Shown in pieces: positions 27,278-29,130 of a stretch of 64,000 nt of DNA (position 1 is its first letter; every line of letters begins with the position of its first letter). The translations under genes and the position numbers were made by a program. A model generated the notes under the pieces. It was given only the letters and a program-made list of their open reading frames with translations, had not been told where the DNA came from and did no database searches. Source of the DNA: Macrostomum lignano (Eukaryota); contig NIVC01001141.1 in NCBI GenBank assembly GCA_002269645.1, forward strand, positions 62,001-126,000. The letters are read 5' to 3'.

Positions 27278-27319
27278 TTGCCCTGACGAAGAAATATAAT
27301 AATTTCGAAATATCGGCAA
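27278..27319 (+). ncRNA. Minimal type I hammerhead ribozyme, copy 1 (predicted cleavage after C27314)
   Basis: TTGCC-CTGACGA-A-GAAAT ataata ATTTC-GAAA-TAT-C-GGCAA: helix I TTGCC/GGCAA, core CUGACGA and GAAA, 5-bp stem II, palindromic ATAT in place of helix III, AUC cleavage triplet. Confidence 0.8.
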
Positions 27320-28154
27320 CTCAACTTAACTGACTTTATTCAGTCCTTTCTACCGTGTCAGTGCCTGAGATTGGAGGTGCCCACCTCTCTCTCTCTCTCC
27401 CTCTCTCTGGCTCTCTCTGGCTCTCTCTCTCTCTCTGGCTCTCTCTCTCTCTCCCTCTCTCTGGCTCTCTCTGGCTCTCTCTCTCTCTCTCTCTTTCTGT
27501 CTCTATCTTTCTCTCTCTCTTTCTCTCTCTCTCTTTCTCTCTCTCTCTGGCTCTCTCTCTCTCTCTCTCTCTCTCTCTCTCTCTCTCTCTCTCTCTCTCT
27601 CTCTCTCTCTCTCTGGCTCTCTCCCTCTGACTCTCTCTCTCTCTCTGGCTCTCTCTCTCTCTCTCTCTCTCTCTCTCTCTCTCTCTCTCTCTCTCTCTCT
27701 CTCTCTCTCTCTCTCTCTCTCTCTGGCTCTCTCTCTCTGGCTCTCTCTCTCTCTCTCTCTCTCTCTCTGGCTCTCTCTCTCTCTTTCTCTCTCTTTCTCT
27801 CTCTCTTTCTCTCTCTCTTTCTCTCTCTCTTTCTCTCTCTCTCTCTCTCTCTCTCTCTCTCTCTCTCTCTCTCTCTCTCTCTCTCTCTCTCTCTCTTCTC
27901 TCTCTCTCTTTCTGTCTCTCTCTTTCTCTCTCTCTTTCTCTCTCTGGCTCTCTCTGGCTCTCTCTGGCTCTCTCTCTCTCTCTCTATCTCTCTCTCTTTC
28001 TCTCTCTCTGGCTCTCTCTCTCTCTCTCTCTCTCTCTCTCTCTCTCTTTCTCTCTCTCTCTCTCTGGCTCTCTCTCTCTCTCTCTCTCTCTCTCTCTCTC
28101 TCTCTCTCTCTCTCTCTCTCTCTCTCTCTCTCTCTCTCTCTTTCTGTCTCTTAC

Positions 28155-28191
28155 AGCCCTGACGAAGAAATTTAATTTCGAAATATCGGCT
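28155..28191 (+). ncRNA. Minimal type I hammerhead ribozyme, copy 2 (cleavage after C28187)
   Basis: AGCC-CTGACGA-A-GAAAT tta ATTTC-GAAA-TAT-C-GGCT. Helix I shows a compensatory T-A to A-T change relative to copy 1. Confidence 0.8.
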
Positions 28192-28611
28192 ACTCAATTT
28201 AAATTGACTTTTTTCAGTCCTTTCTGACTTTCTACCGTGTCAGTGCCCGGGATTGGAGGCGCCCTCCTCTCTCTCTCTCTCTCTCTCTGGCTCTCTCTCT
28301 CTGGCTCTCTCTCTCTCTCTCTCTCTCTCTCTCTGGCTCTCTCTCTCTCTTTCTCTCTCTTTCTCTCTCTCTTTCTCTCTCTCTTTCTCTCTCTCTTTCT
28401 CTCTCTCTCTCTCTCTCTCTCTCTCTCTCTCTCTCTCTCTCTCTCTCTCTCTCTCTCTTTCTCTCTCTCTCTTTCTGTCTCTCTCTTTCTCTCTCTCTTT
28501 CTCTCTCTGGCTCTCTCTGGCTCTCTCTGGCTCTCTCTCTCTCTCTCTCTCTCTCTCTCTCTCTCTCTCTCTCTCTCTCTCTCTCTCTCTCTCTCTCTTT
28601 CTGTCTCTTAC

Positions 28612-28648
28612 AGCCCTGACGAAGAAATTTAATTTCGAAATATCGGCT
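28612..28648 (+). ncRNA. Minimal type I hammerhead ribozyme, copy 3 (cleavage after C28644)
   Basis: Identical to copy 2, 457 bp downstream. Confidence 0.8.
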
Positions 28649-29130
28649 ACTCAATTTAAATTGACTTTTTTCAGTCCTTTCTGACTTTCTACCGTGTCAG
28701 TGCCCGGGATTGGAGGCGCCCTCCTCTCTCTCTCTCTCTCCCTCTCTCTCTCTGGCTCTCTCTCTCTCTCTCTCTCTCTCTCTCTCTCTCTTTCTGTCTC
28801 TCTCTTTCTCTCTCTCTTTCTCTCTCTGGCTCTCTCTGGCTCTCTCTCTCTCTCTCTCTCTCTCTTTCTCTCTCTCTCTCTCTTTCTCTCTCATCTCTGG
28901 CTTCTCTCTCTCTCTCTCTCTCTCTCTCTCTCTCTCTCTCTCTCTCTCTCTCTCTCTCTCTCTCTCTGGCTCTCTCTGGCTCTCTCTCTCTCTCTCTCTC
29001 TCTCTCTCTCTCTCTCTCTCTCTCTCTGGCTCTCGCCCTCAGACTTCCTGGTACTATTCCGTGCAAGGCCAGCATTAATTTTGGCCAACTCCCAAGGCAC
29101 AGACAGAGTGTACTCGACTAGAAGCCCCTC

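Follow-up and report, generated by a model that had tools for sequence, protein, structure and literature searches.

Layout of the locus

The window, by which we mean the whole 64-kb stretch of DNA that was analysed, carries a series of three hammerhead (HHR) motifs interspersed with long CT tracts, and the features of the locus are listed below by position and strand.

26861-26935, + strand: T0, a pure (CT)37.5 tract that bounds the locus on the left (TRF period 2, 100% matches; run-length encoding)
26937-27106, + strand: Y0, one member of a dispersed SINE-like family, containing a GGTTCGATTCC that resembles a tRNA B-box (blastn within the window, local alignment)
27107-27277, + strand: a unique 171-bp segment directly 5' of HHR1, 39% GC
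27278-27319, + strand: HHR copy 1 (pattern match, fold, descriptor)
27315-27385, + strand: spacer 1, 71 nt between the predicted cleavage site and the CT tract
27386-28152, + strand: T1, an interrupted CT tract of 767 bp with internal higher-order repeats (run-length encoding)
28155-28191, + strand: HHR copy 2, with helix I AGCC/GGCT, core at 28159-28165 and C17 at 28187
28188-28267, + strand: spacer 2, 80 nt
28268-28609, + strand: T2, a CT tract of 342 bp and a copy of T1 27703-28048 (96.8% identity)
28612-28648, + strand: HHR copy 3, of the same sequence as copy 2, with C17 at 28644
28645-28724, + strand: spacer 3, 80 nt, the same as spacer 2
28725-29034, + strand: T3, a CT tract of 310 bp
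29028-29130, + strand: YL, a second Y-type repeat represented by its 5' part

The distances between successive C17 residues are 873 and 457 nt, exactly as stated in the original prediction, which had also correctly described each core as being followed by a spacer and then by a CT tract.

Relatives of the Y0 repeat occur in the window at 5015-5600, 13707-14290, 29028-29130 and 31982-32140. ARAGORN detected no tRNA in the Y repeat, and its likeness to a B-box therefore remains an impression, while a protein search with the Y0 translation found no ORFs spanning the related repeats. At the right edge of the locus, YL is 97.7% identical over 29044-29130 to the BEL/Pao LTR flank at 31982-32068 and 40415-40501, and it ends abruptly at 29130, at the junction with a truncated BEL/Pao reverse-transcriptase gene. 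The best homologues of the BEL/Pao pol show 52-57% identity and derive from corals, molluscs and a sponge.

Hammerhead motifs and Penelope-like elements

The three hammerhead-like cores all lie on the + strand, with C17 at 27314, 28187 and 28644. Exact matches to the pattern CTGANGA-N(5-30)-GAAATATC were found at 27283-27314, 28159-28187 and 28616-28644, all on the + strand, and in none of 100 shuffled sequences, which bears out the cores predicted at 27278, 28155 and 28612. When a relaxed minimal-hammerhead descriptor (a minimum of 4 bp in helix I and in helix II, no more than one extra base and a loop 3 of 0-6 nt) was applied to both strands of the 64 kb, it returned just the three array sites, with 0.01 sites expected per dinucleotide-shuffled window. 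The parts of copy 1 are as follows.

27278-27282 and 27315-27319, + strand: helix I, TTGCC paired with GGCAA
27283-27289, + strand: core CTGACGA, followed by an extra A at 27290
27291-27295 and 27302-27306, + strand: helix II, GAAAT paired with ATTTC
27307-27314, + strand: 3' core, with GAAA at 27307-27310, UA at 27311-27312, U16.1 at 27313 and C17 at 27314

The general hammerhead core that was tested (C3 U4 G5 A6 N7 G8 A9 / G12 A13 A14 / A15.1-U16.1 / H17, that is, not G) is present in all three copies as CUGACGA ... GAAA ... U C. A single base occurs between positions 9 and 10.1 in each of them (A27290, A28166 and A28623), and helix II, the 5-bp GAAAU/AUUUC, opens with a G10.1-C11.1 pair. 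Minimum-free-energy folding leaves the core open in every copy, with helices I and II formed. Helix I, with five base pairs in copy 1 and four in copies 2 and 3, is an open stem with neither an internal loop nor a loop 1. The A-UA-U at 15.1-16.1 constitutes an AUAU palindrome with no further helix III and, since the A15.1-U16.1 pair would enclose only 2 nt, helix III is impossible in a monomer. It can form only in trans, in a dimer, where four A-U pairs yield a computed energy of about -1.4 kcal/mol, a value estimated for the isolated helix III duplex alone because the topology of the double hammerhead is not nested.

A compensatory change in helix I had also been proposed. One pair, 2.4-1.4, does change in this way, from U-A in copy 1 to A-U in copies 2 and 3, but the fifth pair is lost in the latter copies (C.A). 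Moreover, the homology between copies 1 and 2 begins just 3 nt upstream of the core, such that the changed 5' base lies across the breakpoint and is not a point substitution, and the compensatory change is therefore weak evidence. The covariance-model check that had been envisaged was negative, with no matches to the Rfam hammerhead models in the whole window at the gathering score, and none at E<=10 in the regions 27000-29200 and 26700-27400. The sole Rfam output consisted of low-complexity matches to an lncRNA model.

A Penelope-like element (PLE) that carries its own hammerhead is present near one end of the window.

430-1336, - strand: a 5'-truncated PLE, with the C-terminal part of the reverse transcriptase, a frameshift and then a GIY-YIG endonuclease
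197-242, - strand: the hammerhead of this PLE, with its motif at 237-202, about 190 nt 3' of the stop codon
237-208, - strand: core CTGACGA at 237-231, extra T at 230, helix II GTCC/GGAC and GAAA at 211-208
208-192, - strand: palindrome AUGCAU at 208-203, U17 at 202, then GGCAACTCAA at 201-192

The region 430-1336 matches the Pfam GIY-YIG family with E=3e-7, and a full-library HMMER search (phmmer) yielded 5730 matches, the top ones combining RVT_1 with a C-terminal GIY-YIG domain; in a word-indexed search, the PLE fragment retrieved a single weak match. The hammerhead of the window PLE resembles array copy 1 in having C at N7 and CC before the core, and in the 10 nt past the cleavage site, GGCAACTCAA, which are identical in the two, and both share the series CCCTGACGA...CGAAAT(GC)AT(T/C)GGCAACTCAA. 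Outside the hammerhead and the next 10 nt, no significant similarity was found between the array and the window PLE, and tblastn of the top phmmer matches against the window detected no PLE coding remnant adjoining the array, so it is the motif itself that carries the case for descent of the array from a PLE end. The 3' boundary of the window PLE was not definable from its flanks. The unique segment at 27107-27277, which gave no blastn matches elsewhere in the window, may be part of the 3' UTR of a 5'-truncated PLE-type element; its GC content is 0.39 compared with 0.29 in the 3' UTR of the window PLE, and alignment of that UTR with the region upstream of HHR1 scored no higher than shuffled sequences.

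Hammerheads of the same build are borne by four related PLE loci from other datasets (L004, L005, L007 and L008), at 72-262 nt 3' of the stop codon in all but L004, whose hammerhead is 5' of the ORF. Their helices I and II covary, and two of the four show the U3/A8 core covariation reported in PMC4209133. The palindromes of the window PLE and of these loci extend over 6-8 nt and include G-C pairs, in contrast to the AUAU of the array, and the trans helix III duplex of the window PLE amounts to about -8.7 kcal/mol against about -1.4 kcal/mol for the array; the helix II sequences also differ from that of the array. No CT tract occurs past the hammerhead in the window PLE, L005, L007 or L008. Of the PLE relatives found, L003 (Logan run SRR31628435) is the closest, with 64% amino-acid identity; a CT-rich tract starts 30 nt past its stop codon, and the L003 sequence ends inside this tract.

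Judged by their sequence, the three array motifs are genuine minimal type I hammerheads of the PLE kind. This agrees with the type originally assigned to them, given the extra base after A9, the G10.1-C11.1 pair, the short helix I and the palindrome, when they are compared with the motifs described in PMC4209133, the window PLE and the four related loci.

Duplication of the copies and origin of the array

The three copies cannot be regarded as independent. Blastn within the window aligns copies 2 and 3 over 131 bp with 100% identity, and copy 1 shows about 82% identity to them. Spacer 2 carries an 8-nt duplication relative to spacer 1, from which it also differs by nine substitutions and a 1-nt indel. 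Upstream of HHR1 the sequence bears no relation to what precedes HHR2 and HHR3. In a CT-rich array of 1.6 kb that contains identical blocks, the assembled number of units is prone to error. T2 repeats the run-length series of T1, and its 96.8% identity to T1 27703-28048 stands well apart from block-shuffled controls, which averaged 85.9% and did not exceed 90.5%. The motif series ttctgt(4)tt(5)tt(4)gg(4)gg is common to T1, T2 and T3. T2 begins directly in a CT run, joined to mid-T1 sequence, a structure that unequal exchange between CT runs would be expected to generate. T1 and T3, on the other hand, both open with a 'cc' interruption 6-7 repeats past the spacer, suggesting that the CT tail was part of the copied unit and not a pre-existing target. 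Independent insertion of all three copies into a pre-existing tract was also considered and is ruled out for copies 2 and 3, because the tract patterns were copied along with them.

Between copies 1 and 2 there are no substitutions in the 26 non-loop positions of the hammerhead compared with nine in the 71-nt spacer, a difference which hints at constraint on the ribozyme but which is not significant (p about 0.08 by our own estimate). No other copies of the unit were detected within the 64-kb window by blastn or by motif scan. In the metagenome collection scanned, the hammerhead pattern gave no matches and a 19-nt conserved spacer word gave two, both in unrelated bacterial-type sequence. The absence of a further copy in either search speaks against the proposal that the unit spreads microsatellites or releases circularised monomers.

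The evidence is best fitted by the alternative that the original prediction had itself allowed, namely local duplication of one PLE terminal fragment. We favour, with a probability of roughly 0.6, an origin from PLE-type 3'-terminal fragments lying in a CT microsatellite, the array having then been built at the DNA level. Each fragment would comprise a hammerhead and a tail of 71-80 nt from a PLE 3' end (pseudo-LTR), contributed by a PLE or by a PLE-dependent non-autonomous element, presumably through truncated retrotransposition, and in copy 1 some 170 nt of the UTR upstream may survive. A hammerhead-spacer block flanked on both sides by CT runs would then have been duplicated, along with part of its tract, when these runs engaged in unequal exchange or in replication slippage, and the identical copies 2 and 3 would be the product. 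Copy 1 would stem from an earlier duplication or, alternatively, from a separate insertion into this tract by a related member of the family. The known PLE bias for microsatellites, the attribution of most single minimal hammerheads to truncated PLEs and the CT-rich tract past the L003 stop codon all fit such an origin. Transcription of the + strand, if it occurs, could allow adjacent hammerheads to pair via AUAU and form a double hammerhead, with cleavage predicted after C27314, C28187 and C28644, although poor cleavage is expected because the AUAU helix is so weak. Ribozyme activity is thus probably low, unequal crossing-over is the likely mechanism, and nothing indicates that the locus depends on cleavage. 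The array looks less like a new mobile element that cleaves itself than like the outcome of a recent duplication of DNA at this locus, and it would accordingly be a fairly ordinary transposon relic in an unusual setting.

Somewhat unlikely, in our estimation, is a short microsatellite-targeted element of PLE type, or mobilised by a PLE, which would carry its own (CU)n 3' tail or employ an endonuclease preferring (CT)n. Two independent 5'-truncated insertions in the same tract might then, with no great probability, underlie copy 1 on the one hand and the ancestor of copies 2 and 3 on the other, and one can tentatively imagine, by analogy with the telomeric repeats of endonuclease-less PLEs, the tail annealing to nicked (GA)n.(CT)n and priming reverse transcription. 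Such an element would account for the difference of about 11% between the spacer of copy 1 and those of copies 2 and 3, for 5' junctions as unrelated as those of 5'-truncated copies would be, and for the 'cc' interruption found at the same distance after spacers 1 and 3. CT tracts lie on both sides of the 449-bp block 26937-27385, (CT)n occurs nowhere else in the 64 kb, and PLEs are biased towards microsatellites, with Athena and Coprina carrying telomeric repeats by their hammerheads (PMC8557442). The CT-rich tract past the stop codon of L003 points the same way, but that sequence ends within it, and the tract has no counterpart past the hammerheads of the window PLE and three of the related loci. 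Copies 2 and 3 are, moreover, certainly a DNA-level duplicate, and the two lineages that then remain at one locus are too few for target preference to be judged.

Less probable again is an active non-LTR retrozyme with a monomer consisting mostly of (CU)n, which would spread microsatellite DNA; it is equally doubtful that cleavage as a dimer yields RNAs of 873 and 457 nt which a tRNA ligase circularises and a PLE reverse transcriptase copies back. The head-to-tail units with one hammerhead each, the copying of hammerhead, spacer and CT tract as a single block, the unchanged hammerhead beside a diverged spacer, the PLE in the same genome and the proposed derivation of retrozymes from PLE pseudo-LTRs (bioRxiv 10.64898/2026.07.22.740005) would all suit it, and the tract directly past the L003 ORF means that a CT tract could be native to the terminal region of that family. 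Nevertheless, the retrozyme-like array of the original prediction does not stand up: the units are unequal, unlike the homogeneous monomers of roughly 150-450 bp in PMC7229834, HHR2 and HHR3 differ entirely from HHR1 in their 5' context, T2 corresponds to an inner stretch of T1 instead of a complete unit, and neither the window nor the metagenome scans revealed a related copy. Helix I, with 4-5 bp and no loop, offers no loop contacts, the trans helix III is weak, and minimal hammerheads of this type cleaved poorly in vitro, dimers included (PMC4209133). Slightly more doubtful still is the idea that hammerhead, spacer and (CT)n together constitute a PLE terminal module, with the (CU)n RNA guiding insertion, or one that is excised as a linear or circular polypyrimidine RNA. 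We consider a chance origin very improbable, in which AT-rich sequence happened to yield a CTGANGA...GAAA string with two short stems that was later duplicated with the microsatellite. There are effectively only two independent sequences, all stems are short and A-U rich, and the Rfam hammerhead models were silent at E<=10 in searches of 0.7-2.2 kb, but the chance expectation is as low as 0.01 per window, three features outside the descriptor fit the published PLE signature, and the 10 nt past the cleavage site recur unchanged at the 3' end of the window PLE.

If the favoured origin from PLE fragments is correct, unequal exchange can amplify a transposon fragment that lies between two microsatellite runs until it mimics a ribozyme-delimited tandem element. 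For genome scans, a tandem array of hammerheads is insufficient for a retrozyme call, and unit homogeneity, copy number and helix III strength should be checked. Should the unit prove to be dispersed and always joined to (CT)n, PLEs, hammerheads and the birth or targeting of microsatellites would be linked in one mechanism, and there would also be a natural source of long (CU)n RNAs; and if the terminal-module or excision reading were true, a ribozyme-bearing retroelement would both seed and expand a microsatellite.

Comparison with known hammerhead systems

Retrozyme arrays consist of homogeneous monomers of roughly 150-450 bp in many copies, and their hammerheads are canonical type I motifs with contacts between loop 1 and loop 2 (PMC7229834, Cervera & de la Pena 2020); non-LTR retrozymes have been argued to derive from PLE pseudo-LTRs (bioRxiv 10.64898/2026.07.22.740005). 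The array resembles metazoan non-LTR retrozymes in its head-to-tail arrangement with one type I hammerhead per unit, and in amphibian retrozymes a weak helix III likewise necessitates dimeric action (PMC7229834; Li et al. 2026 preprint). It differs from them in that its units are unequal, consist mostly of microsatellite, were duplicated locally and carry minimal hammerheads; it has neither homogeneous monomers with a constant hammerhead context nor a canonical hammerhead with loop 1-loop 2 contacts.

PLEs show a documented insertion bias for microsatellites, and in the endonuclease-less Athena and Coprina short reverse-complement telomeric repeats adjoin the hammerhead (as summarised in PMC8557442). 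The array is similar in having a hammerhead near a simple repeat of short unit length that could pair with a repetitive chromosomal target. However, the repeats of Athena and Coprina are telomeric, short and terminal, whereas the (CT)n of the array extends over hundreds of bp, is internal to a chromosome arm and lies 71-80 nt from the cleavage site, and the analogy may serve as a lead only.

The closest likeness is to the minimal hammerheads of metazoan PLEs. These are marked by a base between A9 and 10.1, a G10.1-C11.1 pair and palindromic 15.2/16.2 positions, none of which was imposed by the search descriptor of the paper that described them (PMC4209133, Cervera & De la Pena 2014). The array shares their CUGANGA and GAAA cores, the unpaired base between 9 and 10.1 and the G10.1-C11.1 pair. 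Its helix I of 4-5 bp, with no defined loop 1, corresponds to that of the Schistosoma mansoni families, but its helix II is shorter, with 5 bp compared with 7-8 bp (PMC4209133). Helix III is limited to the palindromic 15.1-16.1, as in the PLE motifs, and the active form must therefore be a dimer; in PMC4209133 such motifs cleaved poorly in vitro even as dimers. Unlike other PLE minimal hammerheads, the array has the shortest possible palindrome, composed entirely of A-U pairs, it adjoins no PLE ORF or pseudo-LTR, and its copies are embedded in, and were duplicated with, a long CT microsatellite. Most minimal hammerheads are isolated single motifs that have been attributed to truncated PLEs (PMC4209133). 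Invertebrate genomes contain thousands of scattered minimal hammerheads of the PLE type, to which the array would add one further example.

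The array and its hammerhead motifs

Three forward-strand sites in the window carry the motif CTGACGA-A-(5-bp stem-loop)-GAAA-UAU-C, with C17, the base preceding the predicted cleavage site, at 27314 (HHR1), 28187 (HHR2) and 28644 (HHR3). The original prediction of three hammerhead cores, each followed by a spacer and a CT tract, agrees with the sequence, and the spacings of 873 nt and 457 nt were confirmed. A search with the pattern CTGANGA-N(5-30)-GAAATATC yielded matches at these three sites alone and 0 in 100 shuffles. The same sites were the sole matches, on both strands of the 64 kb, to a broad minimal-hammerhead descriptor that asked for 4 bp or more in each of helices I and II and allowed 0-1 extra base and a stretch of 0-6 nt from A15.1 to U16.1; it found 0.01 sites per dinucleotide-shuffled window. 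In the minimum-free-energy fold of each copy, helices I and II are formed and the core is unpaired.

Components of the array, between and around the hammerhead motifs (forward strand; spacers are counted from the cleavage site)
26861-26935, T0, pure (CT)37.5, 75 bp
26937-27277, non-repetitive block 5' of HHR1, 341 bp
27315-27385, spacer after HHR1, 71 nt
27386-28152, T1, interrupted CT tract, 767 bp
28188-28267, spacer after HHR2, 80 nt
28268-28609, T2, interrupted CT tract, 342 bp
28645-28724, spacer after HHR3, 80 nt
28725-29034, T3, interrupted CT tract, 310 bp

Copies 2 and 3 show 100% identity over 131 bp (28140-28270 and 28597-28727), and copy 1 matches both at about 82% identity. Between copies 1 and 2, the 26 non-loop hammerhead positions carry 0 substitutions, loop 2 changes from AUAAUA to UUA, and the spacers differ by 9 substitutions, a 1-nt indel and an 8-nt duplication; the contrast between unchanged hammerhead and diverged spacer is suggestive only (p ~0.08, our own hypergeometric estimate). 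The compensatory change claimed for helix I holds for one pair (U-A to A-U) while the next pair is lost in copies 2 and 3. Moreover, since homology of copies 1 and 2 starts just 3 nt upstream of the core, the altered 5' base of helix I lies beyond the breakpoint and is no point substitution.

Hammerheads of Penelope-like elements

A Pfam scan of all long stop-to-stop segments of the window outside obvious repeats located a GIY-YIG domain on the minus strand (430-846, E=3e-7), and the adjoining minus-strand frame (830-1423) reads like the C-terminal part of the reverse transcriptase of a Penelope-like element (PLE). When the latter segment was scanned with HMMER against 1.84 billion representative proteins, 5730 matches were obtained, the best of which carry RVT_1 followed by a C-terminal GIY-YIG domain, the canonical PLE architecture. 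A tblastn search with those proteins gave 430-1336, minus strand, as the sole PLE coding remnant in the window.

The PLE of the window
197-1336, minus strand, 5'-truncated element with C-terminal part of reverse transcriptase, frameshift, GIY-YIG endonuclease and hammerhead
CUGACGA at 237-231 and U17 at 202, minus strand as for the element, hammerhead about 190 nt after the stop codon

This hammerhead has an extra U, helix II GUCC/GGAC, GAAA and the palindrome AUGCAU; helix I is just 2 bp in that copy. The 10 nt past its cleavage site, GGCAACTCAA, are identical to those past C27314 in array copy 1, and CGAAAT--ATCGGCAACTCAA aligns with CGAAATGCATTGGCAACTCAA between the two motifs; outside the motif and these 10 nt, alignment gave no similarity above that of shuffles.

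Contigs were examined for six related PLE proteins, five of which have enough flanking DNA to judge, and hammerheads of array-like build are present at four of the five. The contig of L003 extends only 63 nt downstream of the stop codon and is too short to judge. All are found 3' of the stop codon, at a distance of 72-262 nt, except that of L004, which is 5' of the ORF. From locus to locus helices I and II covary freely, G10.1-C11.1 is fixed, and the U3/A8 core covariation known from PMC4209133 is seen at two of the loci.

Hammerheads of related PLE loci from other datasets (locus; core; extra base; helix II; palindrome at 15.1-16.1; helix I)
L004; CUGAUGA; C; 5 bp; ACGCGU; 5 bp
L005; UUGAAAA; A; 5 bp; ACUGCAGU; 4 bp
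L007; CUGAUGA; G; 4 bp; ACCGGU; 3 bp
L008; UUGAUAA; A; 5 bp; ACAUGU; 3 bp

Cervera and De la Pena (PMC4209133) defined the minimal hammerhead, or min-HHR, in terminal repeats of metazoan PLEs, and three of its features that their search descriptor had not imposed, a base between 9 and 10.1, a conserved G10.1-C11.1 and a palindromic 15.2-16.2, are all present in the array motif. Its palindrome AUAU, the shortest possible, is the sole difference from the build of the PLE-locus hammerheads. By build, the array motif belongs to the PLE min-HHR class; as to location, no PLE body adjoins the array. Searches with Rfam hammerhead models, at gathering score and, for small regions, at E<=10, gave no match, which fits a motif lacking helix III. 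Min-HHRs are mostly single motifs, probably in truncated PLEs, and their cleavage in vitro is poor and confined to dimers or trimers (PMC4209133). Calculated as an isolated trans duplex, AUAU yields about -1.4 kcal/mol, against -8.7 kcal/mol for the palindrome of the window's PLE, and with so weak a duplex cleavage of the array hammerheads is expected to be weak or absent.

Surroundings of the array

The array is intergenic, with BEL/Pao copies on one side and, on the other, a small minus-strand ORF (25965-26330) that includes a transmembrane segment. Its right edge (29028-29130) is the 5' part of a dispersed repeat, Y, cut at 29130 where it joins a truncated, minus-strand BEL/Pao reverse-transcriptase gene, and 29044-29130 is 97.7% identical to sequence beside the BEL/Pao LTR at 31982-32068 and 40415-40501. 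A second Y copy (26937-27106) precedes the 171-bp segment 5' of HHR1, and two Y copies each have a CT tract abutting at the same 5' position. The repeat starts with a tRNA B-box-like GGTTCGATTCC, ARAGORN found no tRNA in it, and the intronic copies carry an internal 67-bp segment 6.7 times in tandem.

Copies of the SINE-like Y repeat
5015-5600
13707-14290
26937-27106
29028-29130
31982-32140
40415-40570

BEL/Pao sequences
33688-40420, minus strand, full LTR retrotransposon with LTRs, primer-binding site and polypurine tract
29129-33690, further related stretch
37563-42478, further related stretch

The 278-bp BEL/Pao LTRs (33688-33965, 40143-40420 and 31710-31987) are all 100% identical, and the gag (37627-40074) and pol (34700-37714) ORFs are in separate frames. 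To the left of the 3' LTR lies a repeat, at 99.8%, of a 4.6-kb piece made up of the internal region's N-terminal part, one LTR and 1.7 kb of flanking sequence; the truncated piece has an 87-bp Y segment at both sides. Either a genuine rearrangement or haplotypes wrongly joined during assembly could account for this. Going by the relatives of its BEL/Pao sequences, the source genome seems to be that of a marine invertebrate.

Exons of an NRAMP/SLC11 gene (minus strand) and an HlyIII/PAQR-like gene (plus strand) lie in an 8.7-kb direct tandem duplication (2391-11077 and 11082-19768, 99.86% identity), which may reflect either a recent segmental event or an error of assembly. At 44081-46291, plus strand, a single 737-codon open frame encodes an FGD-like protein with RhoGEF and FYVE, a large intron-less exon informative on gene structure of the host genome. 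Minisatellites are unusually dense, with periods of 19, 20, 27, 32, 37, 39, 41, 50 and 59 bp and some with 50-60 copies; a perfect (CTGA)69.5 is present in addition, and several of the repeats create long spurious ORFs, for example one of 548 aa at 6133-7779.

Minisatellites
6155-7771
14846-16462
19793-21368
32644-33120
41078-41908
49643-50098
52272-52992
54730-56653
59570-59847
61179-62370
62785-63570

Origin of the array

CT tracts were encoded as run lengths and interruptions.

T2 and the corresponding part of T1
T2: (10)gg(6)gg(15)gg(7)tt(4)tt(5)tt(5)tt(5)tt(30)tt(6)ttctgt(4)tt(5)tt(4)gg(4)gg(4)gg(34)ttctgt(2)t
T1: ...(38)gg(6)gg(14)gg(7)tt(4)tt(5)tt(5)tt(5)tt(32)t(6)ttctgt(4)tt(5)tt(4)gg(4)gg(4)gg...

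T2 is 96.8% identical to T1 at 27703-28048, compared with 85.9% on average and 90.5% at most for block-shuffled T2, and T3 has the series ttctgt(4)tt(5)tt(4)gg(4)gg in common with both. The shared tract patterns indicate that hammerhead, spacer and tract were copied as one, and recently. T2 opens with a plain CT run that leads into sequence from the middle of T1, and unequal exchange between the CT run just past the spacer and one inside the preceding tract would generate such a start. The window is otherwise full of minisatellites, and tandem duplication is thus common in this genome. Rolling-circle copying of one monomer would not give this pattern: it predicts the same tract start in all units and the same 5' context for HHR1 and HHR2, and the context of HHR1 differs.

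The relationship of copy 1 to copies 2 and 3 might alternatively be explained, in the main, by a PLE-type element that carries or targets (CT)n, with which the lack of (CT)n elsewhere in the window is consistent. That the tract was a target is suggested by the documented PLE insertion bias for microsatellites (PMC8557442) and by the CT tracts at either side of the 449-bp block 26937-27385. Pointing to the tract as part of the element are a 'cc' interruption, 6-7 repeats past the spacer, that opens both T1 and T3, and a CT-rich tract beginning 30 nt after the stop codon of L003, which at 64% amino-acid identity is the nearest relative found for the window's PLE; this tract, within L003 1661-1723 (Logan SRR31628435) and running to the end of the contig, has ctttctctct-type interruptions as in the array. 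We nevertheless consider this explanation unlikely, and consider it less likely still that the unit is a PLE-linked element carrying or targeting (CT)n, or releasing (CU)n RNAs.

A literature search for hammerheads or retrozymes with microsatellites returned nothing on a microsatellite unit delimited by a ribozyme; in the literature searched the arrangement is thus unreported, yet the evidence points to an ordinary origin. The array had been proposed to be retrozyme-like. Non-LTR retrozymes consist of homogeneous monomers with a canonical hammerhead that has loop-loop contacts (PMC7229834), whereas the array has neither homogeneous monomers nor a canonical loop-loop hammerhead and therefore falls outside the non-LTR retrozymes under that definition.
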